From Epiperipatus broadwayi (taxonomy: Eukaryota > Animalia > Onychophora), in the NCBI GenBank assembly GCA_028023455.1, contig JAQFVV010000011.1:2294001-2358000 (forward strand): DNA of 64,000 nucleotides. Direction: 5' to 3'. Position 1 is the stretch's first letter; every line of letters starts with the position of its first letter. This document shows, piece by piece, positions 9,281 through 60,301 of the stretch. Position numbers and translations under genes: made by a program. The notes beneath the pieces are model-generated. The model saw only the letters and a program-made list of their open reading frames with translations, searched no databases and had not been told where the DNA came from.

Positions 9281-9372
9281 GCGTTGGTGGCCGAGTGGTC
9301 AGCACAGCTGCCTTACAAGCAGTTGTCGCGGGTTCGCTTCCCGGCCGATGCTTTGACACATGGGAGAAAAAA
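9281..9372 (+). mobile_element. tRNA-Gly-derived short SINE (TAC at anticodon position)
   Basis: gcgttggtggccgagtggtcagcacagctgccttacaagcagttgtcgcgggttcgcttcccggccgatgc has an animal tRNA-Gly(TCC)-like body, followed by the family tail tttgacaca and an A tract. Confidence 0.8.
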
Positions 9373-10436: not shown

Positions 10437-10617
10437 TGAAACACTTATAGTATATATGTGTAGCGAGACCAACTGATGATTCCTGGTTTAGCATGAAATA
10501 CTTTTAGTGGTGATTATTTATCTTTTCAACATATATGTATTGAAGTGTATCAGTGTTATGAGATAGTGTGGAGAGTGGTGGGTCATGTCAACGTCTGTGC
10601 TCATATACTCCATATAT
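10437..10617 (+). mobile_element. Family C short element with HHR motif
   Basis: Homologous to 12620-12808 (-) and 16866-16980. Flanked by a 16-bp duplication with 1 mismatch (10421-10436 and 10618-10633). Confidence 0.75.
10468..10511 (+). ncRNA. Type I hammerhead motif, family C (partly decayed)
   Basis: accaa CTGATGA t tcct ggttt agca t GAAA tactttta gtggt. The core is intact but the stems are damaged relative to the 12730 copy. Confidence 0.6.
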
Positions 10618-11145: not shown

Positions 11146-11190
11146 AGGTTTAGCACTTTCGGAGAACTTAGGTTTCCATATTCATAGCCT
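11146..11190 (-). ncRNA. Variant type I hammerhead motif (AUGAAUA core)
   Basis: Minus strand: aggct ATGAATA t gga aac ctaa gtt c tcc GAAA gtgc TA aacct. Same core, stem I and stem III as the PLE 3'-end motif but a different stem II. Confidence 0.6.
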
Positions 11191-12619: not shown

Positions 12620-12808
12620 TGTAATATATAGGGTATATGAGCACAGACTTTCACACAACCCACCATTCTCCACTCTATCTCATAACACTGATGCACTTGA
12701 ACACATATATGTTGAAAAGATAAATAATCACCAATATACGTATTTCATGCTAAACCAGCAATCATCACTTGGTCCAGATTACCATCTCTACACATATATG
12801 CTATAAAT
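12620..12808 (-). mobile_element. Family C short element with HHR motif
   Basis: Reverse complement aligns with 10445-10617 over ~180 bp. Confidence 0.75.
12730..12773 (-). ncRNA. Type I hammerhead motif, family C (C3G)
   Basis: Minus strand: accaa gTGATGA t tgct ggttt agca t GAAA tacgta TA ttggt. Stems I and II are perfect and stem III is palindromic. Confidence 0.7.
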
Positions 12809-13233: not shown

Positions 13234-13292
13234 ATCCAATATCCCCAGACTAGTTTCTGGCTTGTGGCCTTCATCAGTGAGGAGCCTTGGAT
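13234..13292 (-). ncRNA. Type I hammerhead ribozyme motif, family A
   Basis: Exact reverse complement of the 13939-13997 motif. Confidence 0.85.
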
Positions 13293-13938: not shown

Positions 13939-13997
13939 ATCCAAGGCTCCTCACTGATGAAGGCCACAAGCCAGAAACTAGTCTGGGGATATTGGAT
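13939..13997 (+). ncRNA. Type I hammerhead ribozyme motif, family A
   Basis: atccaa ggc tcctca CTGATGA a ggc cacaa gcc a GAAA ctag TC tgggga ta ttggat. Predicted GUC cleavage after 13983, with a palindromic CTAG stem III. Confidence 0.85.
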
Positions 13998-28961: not shown

Positions 28962-29053
28962 TTTTTTTTTTCATATGTCAAATGCGTTGACCGAGAAGCG
29001 AACCCGGGCCCGCTGCTTGGAAGGCAGCTATGCTAACCACTACGCCACCAACG
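28962..29053 (-). mobile_element. tRNA-Gly(TCC)-derived SINE or tRNA pseudogene, closest to the parent tRNA
   Basis: Reverse complement cgttggtggcgtagtggttagcatagctgccttccaagcagcgggcccgggttcgcttctcggtcaacgca, then tttgacatatg and an A tract. T-loop TTCGCTT instead of TTCGATT, as in the other copies. Confidence 0.8.
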
Positions 29054-31345
29054 TTTGGCAGTTTTTGCTTAATAAGTTTTTATATATTGTGAAATATATT
29101 CATCATTTTCACTTATTATTGATACGTTGTAAGTCTATCTAAGTTTAATTTAGTTTTCTAATTCACAGTTTCATTTCTCTATATCTTTCCAGAAAACGTT
29201 ATTTATCTTATTAAATCCATCTCAAACCTGGATTCTTTCTAGATCTTTTGCAATCTTTCAAGATTCGCTTTAAGAATTCAACTATTTATCTGTTTTTGCC
29301 TACTATTATCTTTTCTAGTAAAATATTCAATCCCATTTCCATTTAACTTCTTAATACGTTCAATGATACTTGCATACTTAATGACGACATATTTAAGTTA
29401 TATATATCACCATGATATAAATTTGAAATTAAAATTGTCCAAAAATATGCGTAGATTTAATTTTAGAAAGTACCTTAAGAACAGCATGCTCAGAAAATAT
29501 TGACTAAAATGCAGATAAAATAAATAAATATTCATTTATGCATCCCGACTACACGTATGTTAGAGACAGATTTACATTGCTGAATAAGTTGCTATGTTAC
29601 TGAATAATTTCCATTGCTAGTTTAATTATTTGAGGCATTTTGATTCTAATAAATATTGAAAAAAGGAATGTGTAAACAACTCCCAGAATTATTCAAGGCT
29701 GGAAATTAAAACATTTTTCATTTTTAATATTTTCATAAGACTACATGCTATCTAAAGTTTGTAAACGTGTTTTACAATAGCCTCTTTACTAAAATTTGAT
29801 CTTCCATTTCAGAAGATGGGAGATGGGTCTTCCTAAATACACAGTACTTTACCTTATAGTACAAGGTTTGATCAGTTAAAAAATATAATTGCCAAAGATA
29901 TATGCTTAAGGTTAATTAATTGAGTGTGAAAATAGTAATTCACAGCCTAAATTTATTATAGAATATTCACTTTGTCAAAACATAATATAAAAACATTAAA
30001 AAATAACTTCAACTTATACATTTTTAACTTGTTTAAAATTAATAAAAGCTATAAACTGAAAAACAAACTGTTATGCATAAAATTCATGTGAAACTAAGGA
30101 TTTGAAATACTAAAAATAGAATGAAAAAGGGGAGACTTCTGATATTTCAAGAAATCCACCTGTGGTGGAATCTAGTGGGTCATCTTACAATAAATAACAG
30201 TAGATGTTTAATCTCTGCTGTCAATGTCTGAGGAATTAACTCCCTCGGTCATATCAATGCTATCAGGTATTTTTTTAAACAAAACTCACCACATTTGTTG
30301 TTCATAGGGGAAACGAAATTTCACCCAAACTCGAACCACTTCATAACCAGTTCTGATTCATCAGCATTATAGAGCTAACTACTTTCTCATACATTAACCT
30401 GTTAGGGCAGTTAATGACTCTGCCATGCATCTAATAGACCTAGGACACCTACATTACCAAGCCAGCCTTGATAGAAGAAGCCAATACCAGCAATGGAATT
30501 GAGCCAACATTAACAAAGTGTATTATAATATTCAACTGTACAAATTTTGTTATGTCAATAAAATATTTTTAAAATAAAATTAGAAATGTTTTTGAACAGC
30601 TTTGGAAAATATTTTTTGGTCAACTAGGGTGTGAGAGCATAAAAATATTATATAAAGCTTTAAGGGAAGACATTTTTAACAAACTGCAGATTTAAACTTC
30701 AGAATTCAGATTTTGGAAAATTCAATGCTGAAGGACATCAGCAATGTTCATTAACCTGACTGCTTCAATTAGAAAAAACTTCATCTTTCATTCTACAGAA
30801 GAAAGAATATAAGCTTCAATGTGGAAGAATATTTTCCCAAACTATTTTTATTATAATAATGATAAATTATGGTTTTGTTTAGAGATTTCTGAAAATGACT
30901 ATCTAAGGCTACCAGACATACTTCAATCCATCGTTTCTCAGCTATGTAATGCATGGGAGAAATGGATAACTTGCTATGACTTTAGTATAAGACCTTAAAC
31001 TGTAATGATTGCCTGCTGTACCAAATGATGTACTAACAGTTTACAGATTTAAGCTGCTTTGATGTCATGGTATTTATTTACTAATAAAGTCAAAAGAATA
31101 GAAATACATTATTGAAACCAACCTGCAGTAATACCAATGAATAATTTGCATATGGATTTAGAGAGAACTGTGGAAAAAAAGAGAATCCTGTTGGAAATTA
31201 ATAATGGATTTTCAGATTCAATATAAACAGCTACCATGTAATAATAAAATTTACCCAAATTATCTCAGTAAATAATGCCGATAAGATGTTTAATTATTTC
31301 AATATTAAATAGCCTTAAGTTGAAATACAGACAATCTGTAAATTT

Positions 31346-32749: not shown

Positions 32750-33771
32750 GTTAGGATATTCAAGCATTAGATTTAAAATACCAGGCCAAGCCCAGCACTT
32801 TATCTAATGGATAACTATTAAATAGAAAATCTGAAATTTTCAGACATTCATATGTCCTCCAATCCAGCGATCTAACTTAAATAGCCATATGGAATTGGTG
32901 TATCTGAACATTGTTCAGTCATATATAAAAGTTAAAGTAGAAAGAATGTTTAACCTAAGCAAATGGCACATGTTTTCATGAGTGGGTGAATTACCGAATT
33001 TGAAATTGGCCCATTCAGCATTTTATTAAATTTATTTATCTTTTCACAATAAAATAATTGGTGCTGTAATAAAGGCTAAAACTGCTTACCTTTTTTTATT
33101 TAAATTAAATTACTTCTAAATGGTAAACCTATTTTGAATCACTAGTGTTGATTTTTTGAAGGTGATTGTGAAATACAACCTGTTTTTATGTTTAATCATC
33201 TCCATTCTTATCTACTTTATATATGACTCTATGAAAGTTACATAAATTTGTCACATGAAAAGGTAGTCCCTGCATGTTACTGGTATAATATATTCAAATT
33301 CGCATATGTTTAACGAAGTGGTTTCTTTCTTCTTTATAACCTAAACTAAAAAAACGTAGACAATATATATATAAATTACAATGAAGGTTTTTGTGGATGA
33401 AAGATGATAATAAAAAATTTTTCTTAAGCATATGATTGCTTATTGTTAAACTGTTGTTTCATTTAAAACTTACAATTATCTGGTTAATATCAAACACCAA
33501 CTTTTACTTAGTTATCTACGATATCTAGATAATGGCAGTAAAGATCTAATTCAAATGTTGGTGCTTTAATGATAATAAATCTAAATGGGAAAATTAGTAA
33601 CTTTATTTACATGTATATCATTTATGTCTTAAATTGTTTAACAAAGTAAAAAAATTATAATTTAGCATTACATTTTTAAATAACTTAAAAAGATCTTTAT
33701 GTTTAAGATCAGACTTATAATACAATCTTCTACTAAAAATTCACTGCATATTTATTATTGTGCATATTTAT

Positions 33772-33774
<3 letters not shown>

Positions 33775-33853
<79 letters not shown>
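33775..33853. repeat. (TA)n microsatellite
   Basis: Pure TA run of ~79 bp. Confidence 0.98.
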
Positions 33854-33856
<3 letters not shown>

Positions 33857-35861
33857 ACCTTATGATTGGGCTCAATGTTTGTCAAGTTCTCTTTAGATCA
33901 TCAATTATCTAAAATTTTAATTAATAATAATTATTCTATATTAAAAAATATGTACATATCAGTATGTGGTCTCATGATTGCTAGATTATAGAATAAAAAT
34001 AAGTAAATTTCATCAATAAATCTCCTGAAAGTGATAAAGAATTGGGCTGTTCAAGATGTGTGTTAGCCCTCTGCCAAATTGTGTGTGAGACTTTTTACAT
34101 GCAGTCTATCAGATGGATTAATTTCAATAGTGTCAAAGTAATAATTTATTAATATTGTGATTAAATTAAAACTATAGAAATATTTTATATTTTATTGGTT
34201 AATAATTGTCATCAAAAGACTTAAAATTATAGTTATTTTAAATTAATCCTTTTAATTAGTTATCAAACATATTTTATGGCAATCTAAAATAATGGTGAAC
34301 AGCTTAGTTAGTTGTCATTTATGCTTATAGATGGAGAGTTATTAAATGTAGGTAAATATATTCACATACAACAATTTAGTCTGTTAATTTTTACAATCAG
34401 TCCATTGTGTTATAAATTAATAAATAGGCCAGCATAGATTCTTATAGGAGGAGAACAGAAAATTATTGGAAAGTGAAAGGAGAATTGGATTTGAATTGGA
34501 TTGAAATGGAATTGTATTGGATTAAGTAAAGCATGGTAAAGTTATATTTCTCTTTTCTATTTTCTAGCATATAAATACAAGTATTCATTATTAGCAACCT
34601 GTAATTAATGGAGTAAAAACTCTATTTGACCTGCATGCAAGACATACGATGACCATCAACTGATAATTACAATGGTTCAATGTAAAACAACTAGACATAT
34701 CGGAGAAAAGCCTGCCTATATGGAATTCAAGTTTAAATCAACTCAGAAGTTCATAAGCTTGAAATTTTGCTATTTATTTTATAAATGTTTTAATTATAAT
34801 ATTTACAAAATGCATTATAGATACAGTTATAATAAATTTGGAATAACAGGAGGAAAGAAGAAACCTATTTTGTACTTTCAATTGGAAAATAAGTTTGAAA
34901 GGTACAGGACTATGATAATAGATATTTAATTTTTTTTTATTGTTATTTAAGTTTATAAGACACTTATGACATGTTTTTCACTAAGGTGAAATATTATTTA
35001 AAGTTAAATCTAAATACCAACAATTTCTATTACTTTATAAAAGCTGGAAAATACGTGGAGAAAGTAATTTAAGAAAAATTAAAAATTATGTTGTTGCAGT
35101 TAATTTAAGAACAATAATAATCTATACCTACCTAATTTAACAATTATAAGTGAGTATAATGCATTACTGGAGTTTTCAAAATATTTTGTTAAATTTCTCA
35201 ACATTAAAAGTTTTCTTGTGTTACCTTGAATTTGTGTTGACCTAAAACCGGATATGACATTAAAACACTTCCTGATAAGTGGAATTAACACATTCATTAA
35301 ATTGAGTTATAGTATTTCATTAATATTGAATTAAATTTTAATTTAATTTTTAGTGTATTAATTACTGTGTTAACCACATGGTAATTATCAAATTTATAAT
35401 ATACTGTTTACTAAATAGTTCCATCATGCAATAAAATATAAGAAATTTATATACGTAATAATAATAAGCAATGTTCATTTTCAACTTCTTAATTTCCTGC
35501 ATATTAAAGCATTTAAAGTTAATAGATGAAACTGCAATCATTTAAAGATCCGACAATGTACCCGGATTACTAATTAAATTAATCAATAAGTATGGAGTAT
35601 ACTCATATCATGGGGGATCAATAAAATGTACTGAAAGGAGTTCTCACAAATTTCTGTAAAGAAAATAAAAGCCATTATGATATCTGTAAGAGAATAAATG
35701 TTTCGATTATTGTCTGCTATAAGTTTAAAAGTAAACCCTAATATCTTCAGGTAATCTACTTATTGTATGTAAAAGAAGAAAATAAATATTTGCAATGCTG
35801 ATAAATAAGCTTGACGTATATAGTGAAATTAAATTCTTAAAAAATTGCAACAATGTTTCTT

Positions 35862-35906
35862 AAGGCTAAGCACTTTCAGAGCTTTCATCTCCATATTCAT
35901 AGCCTT
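35862..35906 (-). ncRNA. Variant hammerhead motif (AUGAAUA core) in PLE 3' end, left arm
   Basis: Minus strand: aaggct ATGAATA t ggag atgaaag ctct GAAA gtgc TT agcctt. Confidence 0.6.
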
Positions 35907-35943
35907 CAACCATAATAATTTATGCAAATCTATGCAAGCTCAT

Positions 35944-37103
35944 TTATATTGTCCATCTCTTTGAAAGAGAAAAACATGTATCCTCCCTGTTTATTGCCTT
36001 CATATGTCTTGCTATATACCATGCCTCCTTAATTTTCCTTTTGATGTCACTCCTCTCAGTGGAAATTATTGTAGGTTCAAATTCATGATTAGCCACTTTT
36101 TGGTGGTCCACAAACACTGATCTACCTTCATTTCTGCTCAATATTCTTTTGTATTAATATTTGTGTTGAGCCACTCTATTGTTTATAGTGACCCGAGTCT
36201 CACCGTAGTATACTGCTCCACAATTTACTTGAGGGCATGTCATCTTGTATACCACATGTGGTGTTGTTTGTAGGTCAATTTTGTCCTTGGAATTGTTAAT
36301 TATTCTATTGGTGTTGGGAGGGGTTCAAAAACCTACTGTGAATTCACTCTGTAATTTTTTGACTAGTTCTCTTGCAACATTAGGTATGTATGGCAGACAT
36401 ATATGTTGTTTTTTTATCCTTGCTTGGTTTGGTTATATTTTCATAAAATGTTTTGATTCTTTTATTGATGGTTATTAAATCATAGCCAACCTTTATTAGA
36501 TCATTGACATACTGGTTGATGTTTATTCTTCTTTCCTCTTCATATTTACATAAATGGTAATTCCTGAACAAAAAGGCAGACAGTCCTGCCAATTTGTGGA
36601 CTCTTGGAGTTTTAGATTTATTATGGATTATCCTCTAATGTGTAATGGTTTGACTTTCATACTGTAATTAAAGCCTCTGTACAGTCTCTGTATTATTAAG
36701 TCCAAGTAATTAATTGTGTTTAATTCATTCTCATCTGTGCAGTTAAATATTAAGTTGGTATGTGCTTGCAATTCATCTTGAATGGCTCTTATGATTGGTT
36801 TAGGTGCTGCGATGAAAATGTCATCTACATACCTGCAATAAATTATTCCAGGTGTCTGTTCTTGGAATTTCGATATAATCTGTTTTTCAAAATAACCAAT
36901 TACAATACTAGATACAATGCCTCTTATTGACAGTCCCATAGGCCATCCATTATTCATTTTATACCATTTGTTCTCAAAAGTCACGAGTATATTATCATCT
37001 AACCATTTCATAAAGTCAATGATAAATTCAATCCTTTGTTCAGGACAGTGATTATTTTGAAGCTCTTCTTTGATTATTCTAATTGATCCTGTTCTGTTTA
37101 TTG
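35944..37103 (-). pseudogene. PLE RT-GIY-YIG polyprotein, left arm (frameshifted)
   Basis: GWPMG, RYVDDIF, then KDKIDLQTTPHVVYKMTC and IKEAWYI. 1-bp deletion near 36630. Confidence 0.9.
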
Positions 37104-38331
37104 AGTTTATGGATTTAATTAAAGATGCAGCCATTAATGACAGATTTAAAATAGCAGCCAGGGATATATCTGAACTATAAGGATCAATAAACAGAACAGG
37201 ATCAATTAGAATAATCAAAGAAGAGCTTCAAAATAATCACTGTCCTGAACAAAGGATTGAATTTATCATTGACTTTATGAAATGGTTAGATGATAATATA
37301 CTCGTGACTTTTGAGAACAAATGGTATAAAATGAATAATGGATGGCCTATGGGACTTCCAATAAGAGGCATTGTATCTAGTATTGTAATTGGTTATTTTG
37401 AAAAACAGATTATATCGAAATTCCAAGAACAGACACCTGGAATAATTTATTGCAGGTATGTAGATGACATTTTCATCGCAGCACCTAAACCAATCATAAC
37501 AGCCATTCAAAATTAATTGCAAGCACATACCAACTTAATATTTATCTGCACAGATGAGAATGAATTAAACACAATTAATTACTTGGACTTAATAATACAG
37601 AGAATACACAGAGGCTTTAATTACAGTATGAAAGTCAAACCATTGCACATTAGAGGATACATCAATAATAAATCTAAAACTCCAAGAATCCACAAATTGG
37701 TGGGACTGTCTGCCTTTTTGTTCAGGAATTACCATTTATGTAAATATGAAGAGGAAAGAAGAATAAACATCAACCAGTATGTCAATGATCTAATAAAGGT
37801 TGGTTATGATTTAATAACCATCAATAAAAGAATCAAAACATTTTATGAAAACATAACCAAACCAAGCAAGCATAAAAAACAACATATATGTCTGCCATAC
37901 ATACTTAATGTTGCAAGAGAACTAGTCAAAAAATTACAGAGTGAATTCACAGTAGGTTTTCGAACCCCTCTAATTCCAATGACAAAATTGACCTACAAAC
38001 AACACCACATGTGGTATACAAGATGACATGCCCTCAAGTAAACTGTGGAGCAGTATATTATGGTGAGACTCGGGTCACTATAAACAATAGAGTGGCTCAA
38101 CACAAATATTTATACAAAAGAGTATTGAGCAGAAATGAAGGTAGATCAGTGTTTGGTGACCACCAAAAAGTGGCTAATCATGAATTTGAACCTGCAAGTG
38201 CTACAATAATTTCCCCTGAGAGGAGTGACATCAAAAGGAAAATTAAGGAGGCATGGTATATAGCAAGAGATATGAAGGCAATAAACAGGAAGGATACATG
38301 TGTTTCTATTTCAAAGAGATGGACAATATAA
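37104..38331 (+). pseudogene. PLE RT-GIY-YIG polyprotein, right arm (nonsense codons and deletion)
   Basis: ARDISEL*GSIN (RT motif-A-like), GWPMGLPI, YVDD, GIY-YIG VYKMTCPQVNCGAVYYGETR and IKEAWYI. Stop at 37514 and a ~22-bp deletion near 37968. Confidence 0.92.
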
Positions 38332-38368
38332 ATGAGCTTGCATAGATTTGCATAAATTATTATGGTTG

Positions 38369-38413
38369 AAGGCTATGAATATGGAGATGAAAGCTCTGAA
38401 AGCGCTTAGCCTT
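38369..38413 (+). ncRNA. Variant hammerhead motif (AUGAAUA core) in PLE 3' end, right arm
   Basis: aaggct ATGAATA t ggag atgaaag ctct GAAA gcgc TT agcctt, 38 nt after the GIY-YIG stop codon. Palindromic GCGC stem III. Confidence 0.65.
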
Positions 38414-40384
38414 AAGAAATATTATTGCAATTTTTTAAGAATTTAATTTCACTATATACGTCAAGCTTATTAAATCTTACATAGTTGTTAATGGTGAAGA
38501 AAAATCTGAAAATGCTGATAAAGGAAGAAATAAAATGATAGAAAATAAATAAGGTAATTTTAAACTGTAAATTAAATAATGCTGCAGATTTGAAATGGCT
38601 GTAATCAAAATTTTGTTCACTCTTTGCTTCACAAGAAGAAATGTGAAAAAAGGTTTATGTAATGTTCGTTTATTATTATTATTATTATTATTAGTTTAAC
38701 ATGTATTGTGCTGTAATATTATGTACATTTGTGTTACAGATATAAAACCGGTCTATGTAGAAAATGAAACCAGTAATATGAATATAAGCTTGTTCAAACT
38801 AAAAATTAAAGGTAATCTTATTGAATATAAATTTTGTTCATATTTTAAATATGATCACAGGTAAAAGGTAAAATTTCTCACAATAAATTATTACAATTTT
38901 ATCTTAATATTTTTCTTTCTTGTTGCTAAAAGCTGCAATTGTTGAATAGTAATAAAAGGGTAATAGACAACTCTAGTCAATTTAAGTGCATAGCTAATGA
39001 CAGTTATAGTTCTGGGTCACTGTCAAATTGATATTGATAATTATAATTTTCATGTGTTAAATAGTGTATCAGCTGCCTTCCTTTTAAATTTAATAAAAAA
39101 AATAAATCTTTTAATTTTTTTATATTTCTCTTTTTAACTCTCACTGTCTTTGAAGGCTTCTGGTCCATCAGGTGGAAATACTAATATCGTTGGTAGCAAG
39201 CTACCAATAATACCAACACTCTGCTACCAAATTATAACATTGGCCATCCAAGCACTTTATTTAGTTTAAGGAAAAAACCCTTTAGGCACCATGTCAATTA
39301 CAATGTAACTAACTTGCTTGCTCGACCAGCAGCATTCATCAGATTCTAGCTACTCCAAATTCTCAGCCCACATTATAAACCTCCAGTTCTCAATCTCAGT
39401 ATCATAGTTATTTAATTATTAAAACATTGGCACTATTCAAAACCTATTGCCTAAAATTTTCCCTTTTAATATTGGCTCAAATCACTAACGATAATTAAAT
39501 ATTTTTATACCCGCTCTCTATCTTTAACTTCTCATTCTTGTCCCATAATAGAAATGCATGCATACATTTTTGTAATACATTAGATATTTAATACATTTTA
39601 TAATATACATTTAAATAATACAAGTAGAAATAAAAGCATATTTAATTAAAGTACACACACACACACCCTAATGAGATTTCATTTTAACGGTCTAATTATG
39701 AAAGTTAATGTACATAATAATAGCCTAAAAATTAATCGTTCTTATAAAGTTTAAAAGTTTTATCTCATTGGTTTTCAACGGCTATAATTAAAAGTTTGAA
39801 GATAAAGGAAAATAAAATGATTTTACCTAGGATTTGAACACTATAATATGCACAATAGGGAAACGTAGCTTCTGCTGATTCTGTTGCTCCAACCGGTTGA
39901 CGATGATTCCTTGTAGGCTTTTTATTTTTTGGTGATGACATATGAACTATTCTGGACATGGACACTTCGCTGATTCTCAGGTTCAAATGAGAATTTTTCT
40001 TCTTCAAACTAACTGCAGGTGTTATTGCAGTGAAGGTTCAGGCCGGCCACACGATTCGATGTGTTCAGCAATGCATTTTTTTATTTAACAGGATCTACTT
40101 TGACTTATTTTTCAATATAATATAATACTATAATGTGATGATGATAATAATAATAATAATAAGTTAAACAATACCAAGCTCTCACTTATATATCCAGTGT
40201 TTCCTTATCTTAGGTTCCATCAGACATTCTATTGCACTCCTATTGGCTTTCTGTTCCTTTTCTTTTAGCATATAAGATTCTTTCCTTTGGTTTATATTTT
40301 AATTAAATAGTAGTAATTAATGCTTTGTTTGTTACTTATCACTAGCCGTTGCAATTATATTTTTCCTTTGTTTTGTTTTTCAGT

Positions 40385-40490: not shown

Positions 40491-42161
40491 TTTTCAGTTT
40501 TTAATTCTTTTATTTGCATTAGTTTTCAATTGTATTATTTTGAGAAAATTCCTTTCTTTTTAACATTTATTTTTATATACGGCACACATCTCGTTACTTT
40601 AATATTATAAGACAAGAATGAAGCTACTTATACCATAAATAAATAATACTATTTATATTATAAATTAATAAAAAAAAATGTTAATCATTTTCTTTTATCT
40701 ATTTTTTATTTCTGAAATCTTTTCCCCCACTTTCAATCGTTTATCTCAATAAAACTCCTACCCCTTGTCTTTTTGTTATTTTCTCTTTCTCCAACTTTTA
40801 AAGCTTTCTTCTTTTTTTTAGACATAAATATACATTTTATTTTTAATTTTTTTTTTAAAACAAATCTCTTTCAACAAATTTATGCATGACAAATACCATG
40901 TAACGACTGTGTGGATATTGCATTTTTCTTATTTATATATTTGTGGTAAGTAATATTAGTATGAGATTTGGTTATCGTCATACTGAATGGTTATAATGAT
41001 ATGCATATAATATTTGGAATATGTGGTATATTTATGTCACATCCCATCAGGTGTACTTGTTCCTTTACCCTGCGTGAGAATAAAAACGATCGTCGTGGGT
41101 GGATCGTGAATGATACCCATTAGGCTTTAAGAAGATTAAGGCTATATTCTCATACTGTAGTTATATAGTTATTTAAATAAGAGATTGACTGCCTTTCCTT
41201 TTTCATATCCCTAAAGATGTCCCAAAAGTGATACTGGGATTTCGGCCCATTTGTAGTCGTGAAATGACCATGGTCTAGGTTGTTTGTTTGTTTTTTCTTT
41301 TTGCCTTAGCTCGACCCCATTATATCTCAGGATATATCATATATTTCATATTCTCATTCCTGAAAGTTAGTATTTAAAAATGTAACCTGCACTAAAATGA
41401 TAAGAAATAATATTTGTCAAAAGTTATTTTATATTAGTAGATTGCTATCTAGTGCTCATCTATATGAGATGATACCATCTATATGATTAATCTTCGTTGC
41501 TTATTATTTATACCCAAGTGTTTATAATGCTGATGTTTTCATTAGTGTTGGAAGAACCCTATAATATCAAATTAATGATCGAAATGTAGGACAACAGTAG
41601 TATTGACTCTCAATGTAGTTTTAACTGTCTAATATTTTAAATAGATGAATAAAATAGAAAATTAATAGTTTCATTAACATGTTGTAGCATAAATCATTAT
41701 ACTTTAAGAGTATCCATTATATTATATTATCTAATATACTATTGGTAGCTTGTTAACCATCGGATAGAATCTTTGTAATTATATTACCTGTATATATTTT
41801 AAATTATTACGTTTCATAAAATCATGCTTAATAAAGAAATAAAATATAAAGTGTGTAGTAAGTTAAAATAAATTCAACTGAAGGAATAGATGTAAATAAT
41901 TATTAATTAAAAGATGGTAATCTATTAAAATTGTAAACAGATCCAAAGAGATCTTCCTTTAATAAAATAATTATGTAACTAAATCTTGTTTTGCATAGTT
42001 TCTGTTCATAATTAACCAAGAATATATATCTTTTCTTTTGCTGTTATTATTTTATAAATTTATAAATAGTGTAAATAATTTTTGTTTTGAAAATGTATCC
42101 AATTGTCCATGATCTTATTGCTAAACACTATTCATATTGTTATTACTACTGGTATCAACAC

Positions 42162-42163
<2 letters not shown>

Positions 42164-42238
<75 letters not shown>

Positions 42239-42330
42239 CATCATCATCATCATCATCATTATCATTATCATCATTATTATTATTATCATCATCATTATTA
42301 TTATAAGTATTATTATTGTTATAAATATCA
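42164..42330. repeat. (TTA)n/(TCA)n compound microsatellite
   Basis: Direct reading. It explains the poly-I/L/Y/N ORFs. Confidence 0.97.
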
Positions 42331-43498
42331 TCATTTAATATGAGCAATTTATTATGTGTTAGCATATCAGAAATAAGTTTTTGCTAAGTTCTTATATTTA
42401 AGAGTATATAAAATGTTACTACTTATTGATCAAAACACTAAATCTTAAGTACATATACTATTTTTCAAATAATGTTTTAAGGGTTAAATATTTAGTTCTT
42501 GGAATAATCCTTTTTATAAATTATTAGATACCATCATTCACTGGGCTTGATCATATTGTCTATGGTCATTAAATAAAAGTTAGTTTATAAATTATTATTA
42601 TTATTATATTTACTTTATTATTAAGAATTTATTAATACATCCTAAAATTTAAAGTTTATTTTTATTGTTGCTATTGGAATAGTTAAATATTCTTTACTAA
42701 TTCCATTTTTGCATTATGAGCTATCTTTGTTTGCTATATTTGGATAGTAGCAAAATTCTTCTTACTGATTCAGATATACTTTTAAAATAGTAACATTTCA
42801 AATTATTTAAACCCTGAGAAAATTAAGCTATTGATTAATAATTTCAACTTTGATTTTATTATTAGTTTTTCATTCTTAAGTTATCTGTTATGCATCATCT
42901 TGTTCTCTTATATTCATTCTTATTGTTTATTCGATTCAGTAGAATTTTAAAATGTAAGCTTCTTTCTCTAGTTTAAAACTTATAAACCATTTTAAATTAG
43001 TAGTTAAATATTTTTTTATTAGTCAAGCTTGGAACCCCTTGCCTTTATTTCATTATTGTCATGCTTTTGTTTGTAATAATATCAGTTTAATAGTTCAGGA
43101 TCTCATTCTTTATCACCAAATTGTTATCATAGCTTGTCCATATTTTATTTTATTTTATTTTCAGTCTCATTTTGTTTTAAGTCACTATCATCATTAATTC
43201 ATCCTTCATTGATCCTCATTCTATCACAACCGTAAGTACACATCACCCTAATGCATTTTCCTTTCTCTTATTTTCACCCTTAAGTCCATTCATTTTTATT
43301 AGTTGATTATTATTTGTTCTTCATCACCCATTTAATCTTCTACATCTTTATTCATTTATCTTCCAACTCATAATTCTAATCCCATACTCAGTTCATACAT
43401 AGATGCCCTCCAAATTATTAACTATCTAGTAGAATTACAAGTTAAATCTATCTTTTAATATTTTTATTTTAGTTCTTTGTAGTTAGTTTAATCAATGT

Positions 43499-48286: not shown

Positions 48287-48325
48287 TGTAGCTGATGAAA
48301 GAGTTTCCTTGAAACTAGTTCTGTG
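48287..48325 (+). ncRNA. Isolated type I hammerhead motif
   Basis: tgtag CTGATGA aag agtttc ctt GAAA ctag TT ctgtg. Stem I is G-U rich. Confidence 0.5.
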
Positions 48326-56995: not shown

Positions 56996-58153
56996 ATCAC
57001 CTGATTACCATTCTTTAGGTTTACACAAGCTGTTTCCATAGAAGCAAAACTCTTCATACAGTAGCCCCATTGAGTGCAAGCGAGAGTAATCAATGGATTC
57101 AGGAAGATTTGGGGATAAAATCTCTATCTATTGCTTACTCATCCAACATCCCCAGACTAGTTTATAGTTTGTCACTTTGCATCTAGATCTTAGAATCTAA
57201 TGCAACCCTGCAGCAGCCACCTTTTACCTAATTAGCTAACTATAAAGCTTTGAGTCCAAAATGAAAATACAATAATGCTTTCAATTTAAGCTCATTAGCT
57301 TGTATAGTTACATAGATCTGAACTCAGCATTCACACTTTTTGGTATCTTTGGTTCTTTAATAACCATAGTCACCAATAATCCTATTGGGAAGCCTTGGTA
57401 TTAAACCACTAAACATGAGCTTGAATTAAAAACATTATTGTGTTTTCATTTTGGACTCAAAGCTTTATTGTTAGCTAATAAGGTAAAAGGTGGCTGCTGG
57501 TGGGTTGCATTTGATCCCAAGATCTAGGTGCAGTGCTCTCAGATCCAATGCTCCTCACTGATGAAAGCCACAAGCTAGAAACTAGTCTAGAGATATCGGA
57601 TGAATAGGCATTAAATAGGAATTTTATGCACAAAATTTGCTGTATTCATTGATTACTCTGTCTTGCATTGGGTGGTGCTACTATATGGAGAGTTTTATCT
57701 CTGTGTAAACAGCTTGTGTAAGAATAAAGAATGGTGATCATGTGATGTTTAGTGGCTTAATACCAATTCTGCACAATAGGGTTATGGTGACTGAGGTAGA
57801 CATCAAAAAGTAAGGATGCTGAACTGAGTTCAGATCTATGTGACTATACAAACTAATGATCTTAAATTAAAAACATCATTGTGTTTTCATTTTAGACTCA
57901 AAGTTTTATAGTTAGCTAATGTAAAATATTCCTGATGGAGGGTTGCATTAGGTCCTAAGATATCCTAATATCTAGGTGCAGTGCTCTCAGATCCAAGGCT
58001 CCTCACTGATAAAAGCCACAAGCTAGAAACTAGTCTGGGTATACTGGATGAGTAGGCACTAGATAGGGATTTTAGGCACAAACCTTTTTGCATCCATTGA
58101 TTATTCTGGTTTGTACTGAGTGGTGCTACTGTATGGAGAGTTCTGCCTCTGTG
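56996..58153. mobile_element. Family A insertion: one inverted monomer plus tandem plus-sense units, 12-bp TSD
   Basis: Minus-sense 56996-57416 and plus-sense 57417-58153, with HHR cores at 57558 (CTGATGA) and 58006 (CTGATAA), 448 bp apart. TSD tattttcataat at 56984-56995 and 58154-58165. Confidence 0.88.
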
Positions 58154-60010: not shown

Positions 60011-60301
60011 AGTTATTAAAACAGGCAAACAGTAGTGCCACTCAGTGCAAGCCAGAGTAATCAATGGATGCCAGAAGGCTTACGTGTTTTCAGATCCAAG
60101 GCACCTCACTGATGAAAGCCACAAGCTAGAAACTAGTTTGGGGATATTGGATGATTAGGCACTAGATAGAGTTTTTATGCACAAGCCTTCTGGCATCCAT
60201 TGATTACTCTGGATTGCACTGAGTGGCACTACAGGATGGAGAGTTTTGCCTGTTTTAATAACAGTTATGAGCAAGCAGAAGAAATGGTGATCATGTGATA
60301 T
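60011..60301. mobile_element. Family A fold-back with HHR in the loop, 11-bp TSD
   Basis: Arm 60012-60081 inverts 60183-60262. HHR 60094-60152: acctca CTGATGA a agc cacaa gct a GAAA ctag TT tgggga. TSD ttagaagaaaa at 60000-60010 and 60302-60312. Confidence 0.88.

Follow-up and report, generated by a model that had tools for sequence, protein, structure and literature searches.

Minimal type-I hammerhead ribozymes of Penelope-like elements (PLEs) were reportedly treated by Lunse, Weinberg and Breaker in 2017. Positions 3 and 8 of the hammerhead core, which are C3 and G8 in the consensus CUGANGA, are said to have been exchanged in all combinations in vitro by Przybilski and Hammann in 2007 (RNA 13:1625), with a tolerance that depended on the surrounding sequence. 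The PLE hammerheads (min-HHRs) are characterized by one nucleotide left unpaired between A9 and G10.1, by a minimal helix III that is self-complementary, by their short stem I, and by their location in the terminal region of the element (PMC4209133). Such motifs occur in high copy number, mostly within truncated elements, and are often found singly or as opposite-strand pairs (PMC4209133). In the published view, cleavage by PLE hammerheads is slow, takes place in dimers, and may be aided by other factors (PMC6765202), and the PLE hammerhead of Anolis is reported to require the PLE protein (PMC11167929).

The identity of the 3-8 pair is known to vary both in nature and in engineered ribozymes. 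Natural U3-A8 covariation in hammerheads was described in 2011 by Perreault et al. (PMC3088659), and in 2014 it was reported for PLE hammerheads, namely for the Cercyon PLE of Schistosoma mansoni with about 1,300 matches (Cervera and de la Pena, PMC4209133). Engineered C3G/G8C double mutants were made by Martick and Scott in 2006, as cited in PMC11167929, and such mutants show that positions 3 and 8 form a base pair whose identity can be swapped with partial activity kept (PMC11167929, PMC9901934). In a comprehensive pairwise mutagenesis scan of a type III hammerhead, strong rescue was obtained for C3G+G8C only, the other double mutants of this region being of low activity (PMC9901934). In the searchable literature, 'G3-C8' was met as an engineered variant only, with no report of a natural G3-C8 hammerhead. 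A full-text search likewise returned no paper combining 'hammerhead' with 'A3-U8', though an earlier description may exist.

The A3-U8 motif and its host element

A hammerhead-like motif with A3 and U8 in place of the consensus bases (copy A) occupies 45 nt at positions 38369-38413 on the forward strand of the window, i.e., of the whole 64-kb stretch of DNA that was analysed. It is delineated by sequence reading, descriptor matches, and MFE folds. Its stem I of 6 bp is made up of AAGGCU (38369-38374) and AGCCUU (38408-38413). Between these two strands lie the 5' core strand AUGAAUA (A3 U4 G5 A6 A7 U8 A9, 38375-38381), a bulged U between A9 and G10.1 (38382), the 5' strand GGAG of a 4-bp stem II (38383-38386), loop II with the 7-nt sequence AUGAAAG (38387-38393), the 3' strand CUCU of stem II (38394-38397), the 3' core GAAA (G12 A13 A14 A15.1, 38398-38401), the self-complementary 4-nt helix III segment GCGC (38402-38405), and U16.1 U17 (38406-38407). 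The predicted cleavage position is after 38407. The other nucleotides of the hammerhead core are all present (U4 G5 A6, A9, G12 A13 A14, A15.1-U16.1, and H17), and the departures from CUGANGA are confined to positions 3 and 8, where A and U can pair. Direct reading of the sequence agrees with all segments listed for this motif in the initial annotation, with two qualifications concerning the stems. The four pairs ascribed to stem II are indeed there, but the closing pair is a G.U wobble rather than G-C. Stem III, which had been called palindromic, deserves this name for GCGC of copy A but not for about half of the family depth, where GUGC, not a true palindrome, is found.

All three copies of the motif in the window bear A3 and U8 instead of C3 and G8. 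Copy B, at 35862-35906 on the reverse strand, lies in the other arm of a palindrome; it is the mirror copy that had been announced, and the single difference from copy A is the change of GCGC to GUGC in helix III. Copy C, at 11146-11190 on the reverse strand, is a third locus added by a relaxed descriptor. It keeps AGGCU-AUGAAUA-U-GGA and GAAA-GUGC-U exactly, has a C.A mismatch in stem I, and its stem II differs yet pairs (GGAAAC / CUAA / GUU(C)UCC). This stem is closed by G-C. Such a G10.1-C11.1 closing pair is a hallmark of the PLE min-HHRs; copies A and B have G.U in its place, as does the family consensus. At the cleavage site, copies A and B have U17 and copy C has A17, so that position 17 is H (not G) in each of them. 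Copy C aligns with copy A beyond the motif as well, so the two come from homologous 3' UTRs, of which that of copy C has diverged.

Between the stop (38331) of a C-terminal ORF at 38011-38331 on the forward strand and the start of copy A lie 37 nt. This ORF was read as a PLE-type GIY-YIG endonuclease (..VYKMTCPQVNCGAVYYGET..), and in tblastn it matches PLE relatives in which PF01541 is weakly recognized. It belongs to the right arm of the palindrome (37184-38510, forward strand), a 5'-truncated PLE composed of an RT remnant, a thumb/linker part, the GIY-YIG endonuclease, and a 3' UTR whose tail varies. The left arm (35804-37104, reverse strand) was recognized from the inverted repeat as a second 5'-truncated PLE copy standing head to head with the first, and the likeness between 35804-37104 and 37184-38471 amounts to 96-98%. 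The RT remnant gives an RVT_1 score of 29.2 bits, just below the cut-off of 29.6. On the basis of the RVT_1 remnant, the GIY-YIG domain, the tblastn matches, the palindrome, and the variable 3' ends, the element is a Penelope-like element of the C-terminal endonuclease type; head-to-head paired copies are a typical PLE arrangement (PMC8557442). Because copies A and B sit in 5'-truncated dead insertions, they are passengers at this locus. Past 38471, the palindrome arms diverge, in agreement with published accounts of PLE insertions whose 3' tail varies. Family copies in contigs of sequencing runs stop at 38483, 38504, and 38511, and the family depth ends at about 38505-38511.

Searches at the protein level were made with two pieces of the element. 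For a 106-aa endonuclease piece, a homologous-protein search gave no match and an exact look-up no record. A 169-aa piece compared with protein representatives had 19 matches, all of them at no more than 30% identity. The protein match P0005 shows 59% identity over an 18-residue stretch only, and P0002, considered as a PLE relative, was rejected as a false match, being a bacterial adhesin.

The chance occurrence of the motif was estimated with a full descriptor comprising a Watson-Crick 3-8 pair, an optional bulge, a stem II of at least 3 bp, GAAA, U-H, and a stem I of at least 5 bp. With an A-U core, it yields about 0.07 matches per shuffled 64-kb window versus two observed, and the motif is beyond chance. 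With the Rfam covariance models, the motif gave no match to a hammerhead family, whether at the gathering score or even at E<=10, and the initial annotation had held that CUGANGA-based searches would miss it. The silence of Rfam is uninformative as to the nature of the motif, since a canonical min-HHR at 13242-13283 in the same window, which served as a control, is missed as well. A pattern scan of metagenomes for the A3-U8 block gave 0 matches.

By its build and its position behind the endonuclease ORF, the motif bears out the earlier proposal that the 3' UTR carries a hammerhead fold of the PLE type. Probably, it is the hammerhead module of the PLE, of the minimal type I almost without a helix III of its own, and with a compensated A3-U8 core. 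It shares with the PLE min-HHRs (PMC4209133) the location in the terminal repeat or 3' UTR, the short stem I, the bulge between A9 and G10.1, the U-H site, and the opposite-strand pair, as well as GAAA followed by a self-complementary helix III of 2-6 nt, which implies action as a dimer. Unlike them, it has A3-U8 for C3-G8, its G10.1 in copy A pairs with U, and its U17 could pair with A3. The U3-A8 hammerheads offer a precedent for a compensated Watson-Crick replacement of C3-G8 in natural ribozymes, including those of PLEs, whereas in the window motif the orientation is reversed, with a purine at position 3 and a pyrimidine at position 8. In contrast to the engineered C3G/G8C mutants, it is a natural variant, and the strong rescue in PMC9901934 concerns G-C alone.

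The window holds other hammerheads as well. Canonical C3-G8 min-HHRs of other short repeat families, retrozyme-like in their build (CUGAUGA ... GAAA CUAG U-H), are located at 13242-13283(-) and 13948-13989(+), and further ones at 57558-57595(+), 60104-60143(+), and 48287-48325(+); in a retrozyme-like copy at 58000-58041(+), G8 is changed to A (CUGAUAA). A hammerhead family with UACGUA as helix III is represented by GUGAUGA at 12730-12773(-), where G3 stands opposite G8, unpaired, and by canonical CUGAUGA at 10473-10506(+). Aside from hammerheads, there are tRNA matches at 9281-9352(+) and 28983-29054(-), with 33 and 42 bits, possibly the heads of tRNA-derived SINEs instead of tRNA genes, and long microsatellites (TA)n and (ATT/ATC)n at 33748-33876 and 42138-42370.

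Conservation in the family and the 3-8 pair in PLE relatives

Variation within the family was followed in assembled contigs of public sequencing runs (Logan), which were placed on 38335-38445 at a likeness of at least 80% and included 201 DNA contigs from the source organism. In these 201 contigs, variants at 38377-38382, in GAAA, and at U16.1 and U17 do not exceed 0.2%, and the same is true for stem I apart from 38369, where A>G at 15% converts A-U into G.U. Stem II is nearly fixed, and loop II (38387-38392) varies by up to 36%; since the likeness filter biases every column equally, the difference between the core and loop II can be taken as meaningful. At 38403, C and U share the depth about equally, corresponding to GCGC and GUGC. 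In the source organism, A3 is A in 99.9% of the depth (0.1% A>G), and U8 is without variation in the run contigs. In one run from another organism (organism D), G3 accounts for 30% of the depth (six contigs), giving a G3.U8 wobble. At U4 G5 A6, A9, and G12 A13 A14, no variant reaches 2% in the 201 DNA contigs, and a single run labelled RNA shows U4>C, at 8%. As seen from loose contig ends, subfamilies whose upstream sequences are unrelated meet precisely where the motif starts. Thus, the homology of copy C and the conservation in contigs uphold the view that A3-U8 is a feature of the family and not a one-off mutation. The A3-U8 motif is conserved and high-copy in the source genome, and its conservation within the family could partly reflect recent amplification.

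The region is also contained in runs labelled RNA from three organisms (the source organism, organism B, and organism D). One contig of such a run (X7, record 23) ends exactly at 38407, and at this position the depth of RNA contigs halves while that of DNA contigs rises, an anecdotal observation made on contigs only. As contig ends are not molecule ends, neither this contig end nor the drop in depth was counted as evidence of cleavage.

For the scan of distant PLE relatives, 450 nt behind each endonuclease stop were inspected without any restriction on positions 3 and 8. Every flank, in L001, L002, L003, L005, L006, and L007, turned out to contain one and only one hammerhead built in this way. 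Three of these loci belong to animal assemblies and carry a G3-C8 pair on the forward strand: L001:12546-12592 and L002:4819-4865 with GUGACCA, and L005:4045-4092 with GUGAACA (assemblies GCA_013358835.2, GCA_964199295.2, and GCA_043290135.1). These G3-C8 min-HHRs lie 90-240 nt behind the endonuclease stop. In L003, a marine metagenome contig, UUGAAAA with a U-A pair is present in both terminal repeats flanking the ORFs (L003:312-358 and L003:3150-3197), and the metagenome contigs L006 and L007 have CUGAGGA and CUGAAGA, both with a C-G pair. The unpaired nucleotide between A9 and G10.1 and the self-complementary minimal helix III are common to the window motif and all of these relatives. L001 is again an inverted PLE pair, in which the mirror hammerhead at L001:9717-9763(-) reads GUUACCA, with G5 changed to U, so that a dead core stands beside an intact copy.

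Ten PLE hammerheads were brought together in an alignment (A4), from which L008, with its too short contig, and L009 were left out; the latter offered U3.G8 candidates alone, away from the expected place. The 3-8 pair in A4 is A-U in three sequences, G-C in three, C-G in two, and U-A in two, i.e., it is 100% paired with 0 mismatches. The structure as a whole is 92% paired versus 61.8 +/- 3.3% for shuffled sequences (0 of 500 reach 92%) and at most 43% with slid partners. A15.1-U16.1 is A-U in 10/10 sequences of A4, while U4 G5 A6, A9, and G12 A13 A14 form invariant columns both here and in a further alignment, named A3. Because the G-C loci look interrelated and copies A and B are near-identical, these sequences stand for about five independent lineages, not ten. 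The conservation of the core along with the occurrence of all four Watson-Crick 3-8 pairs without a mismatch makes the fold and the compensated pair well supported. It had been proposed that positions 3 and 8 changed together with their pairing kept, and this is what is found, with A-U in copies A, B, and C, no mismatches among the relatives, and every type of Watson-Crick pair represented when these are included. Novelty of 3-8 covariation as such, on the other hand, is not supported, since natural U3-A8 had been published in 2011 (PMC3088659) and, for PLEs, in 2014 (PMC4209133).

As to the origin of the reversed pair, U3-A8 is reachable from C3-G8 by two transitions through U.G, whereas A3-U8 is not. 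A3-U8 is separated by two transitions, through G.U, from G3-C8, and both G3-C8 relatives and G3.U8 variants are observed. This transition path and the G3.U8 variants suggest that A3-U8 may have arisen from G3-C8 via G3.U8. In a thumb-domain tree, the window element sits on a long branch and obtains no firm place, either among the PLE clades or beside the G-C lineage.

Predicted folding, cleavage, and rival readings

The MFE structure of a single isolated 45-mer contains stems I and II. For two molecules, the MFE structure is a double hammerhead in which helix III is intermolecular, with 6 bp, and stem I forms in trans; its energy is better by 6.9 kcal/mol than that of two separate monomers. 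Both the monomer and the dimer calculation give the same picture for the canonical min-HHR at 13242-13283. In the dimer MFE of the motif, U17 pairs with A3, adding -2.6 kcal/mol. Within 141 nt of natural context, the monomer MFE is another fold, without a hammerhead and with z of about 0.

According to the mechanism proposed for the motif, two transcript copies, either tandem units or separate molecules, would pair through the self-complementary A-GYGC-U, and this pairing would create a 6-bp intermolecular helix III with stem I in trans, i.e., a double hammerhead. Each of the active sites would then cut after U17 (38407), and the products would carry a 2',3'-cyclic phosphate end and a 5'-OH end starting with AGCCUU. 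A3-U8 would take the place of C3-G8 as the tertiary pair that holds nucleotide 8, whose 2'-OH would be the general acid. The biological role may consist in the processing of multimeric or read-through PLE transcripts, and the reaction may need a PLE protein or a chaperone. Formation of the dimer and its cleavage are predictions, and the double hammerhead fits both the published view of PLE hammerheads as slowly cleaving dimers (PMC6765202) and the reported dependence of the Anolis hammerhead on the PLE protein (PMC11167929). Three features of copy A could lower its activity, namely the weaker A-U pair, the G10.1.U11.1 wobble, and the ability of U17 to pair with A3. The putative A3-U17 pairing resembles the C3-G17 trap that PMC3884650 considers.

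Several lines of evidence would also agree with a hammerhead-derived relic that does not cleave, its fold being kept, for example, for recognition by the PLE RT starting TPRT, or its apparent conservation being a result of recent amplification. Cleavage by PLE hammerheads is dispensable for insertion in vitro, where hammerhead mutants are without effect, and RNA-seq data from Anolis showed no ends at the site (PMC11167929). Double mutants of the A-U type were poorly active in one deep mutational scan (PMC9901934), and copy A has both the G10.1.U11.1 wobble and the possible A3-U17 pairing. In addition, the motif lies 60-100 nt from the 3' end of the element, where reverse transcription starts. 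A relic of this kind is nevertheless considered unlikely, as the unpaired catalytic nucleotides (UGA, A9, and GAA) vary as little as the stems do, in contrast to the freely varying loop II, a pattern that fits a catalytic core better than a protein-binding hairpin. Moreover, the 3-8 position stays Watson-Crick via four pair types in separate lineages, which would not be expected unless the active fold depends on its tertiary pair.

It is highly improbable that the motif merely resembles a hammerhead by chance or belongs to some other small RNA, such as a C/D-box snoRNA-like molecule with a terminal stem, in which AUGAAUA would be a degenerate C box and CUGA a D box. The sole Rfam matches in the region are indeed weak ones to C/D snoRNA families and to one bacterial sRNA, but every one of them has E >1 (1.1-5.8), with 13-16 bits against gathering scores of 45-50. 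With 45 nt, the motif falls short of the length of a C/D-box snoRNA; it lacks the second GA that a C box would have, so that no k-turn is possible, and its CUGA is not adjacent to the terminal stem. As regards pure coincidence, the full hammerhead descriptor is expected only about 0.07 times per window, and the motif occupies a homologous place in PLEs of other animals. The descriptor statistics, the conservation in contigs, the pairing in A4, and the position in the relatives effectively refute both the chance and the snoRNA interpretation.

Consequences for hammerheads of Penelope-like elements

The reading preferred here is that of a PLE hammerhead: judged by its sequence, A3-U8 is a real and conserved core variant, compensated at the 3-8 pair, within an already known type of ribozyme. 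Its cleavage is predicted, and it extends the published covariation to the reversed orientation. No new kind of ribozyme and no new mechanism are revealed by it. A wider proposal, put forward tentatively and with some doubt, is that natural PLE hammerheads use all four Watson-Crick 3-8 pairs, and that whole lineages have A3-U8 (the source genome and its relatives) or G3-C8 (the three other animal assemblies), with hammerheads that may still be active ribozymes. If this is true, censuses based on CUGANGA (plus UUGANAA) would systematically miss the A3-U8 and G3-C8 lineages, some PLE groups reported to be without canonical hammerheads may need re-examination, and the transitions from G3-C8 through G3.U8 to A3-U8 would explain the reversed pair.

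For the family of PLE ribozymes, the finding means that descriptor and covariance-model searches under-count the hammerheads. It provides natural evidence at the level of lineages that positions 3 and 8 are constrained as a pair and not in base identity, now in the purine-pyrimidine orientation as well. The natural series C-G, U-A, G-C, G.U, and A-U within one scaffold would offer a test of how the identity of the pair tunes cleavage.
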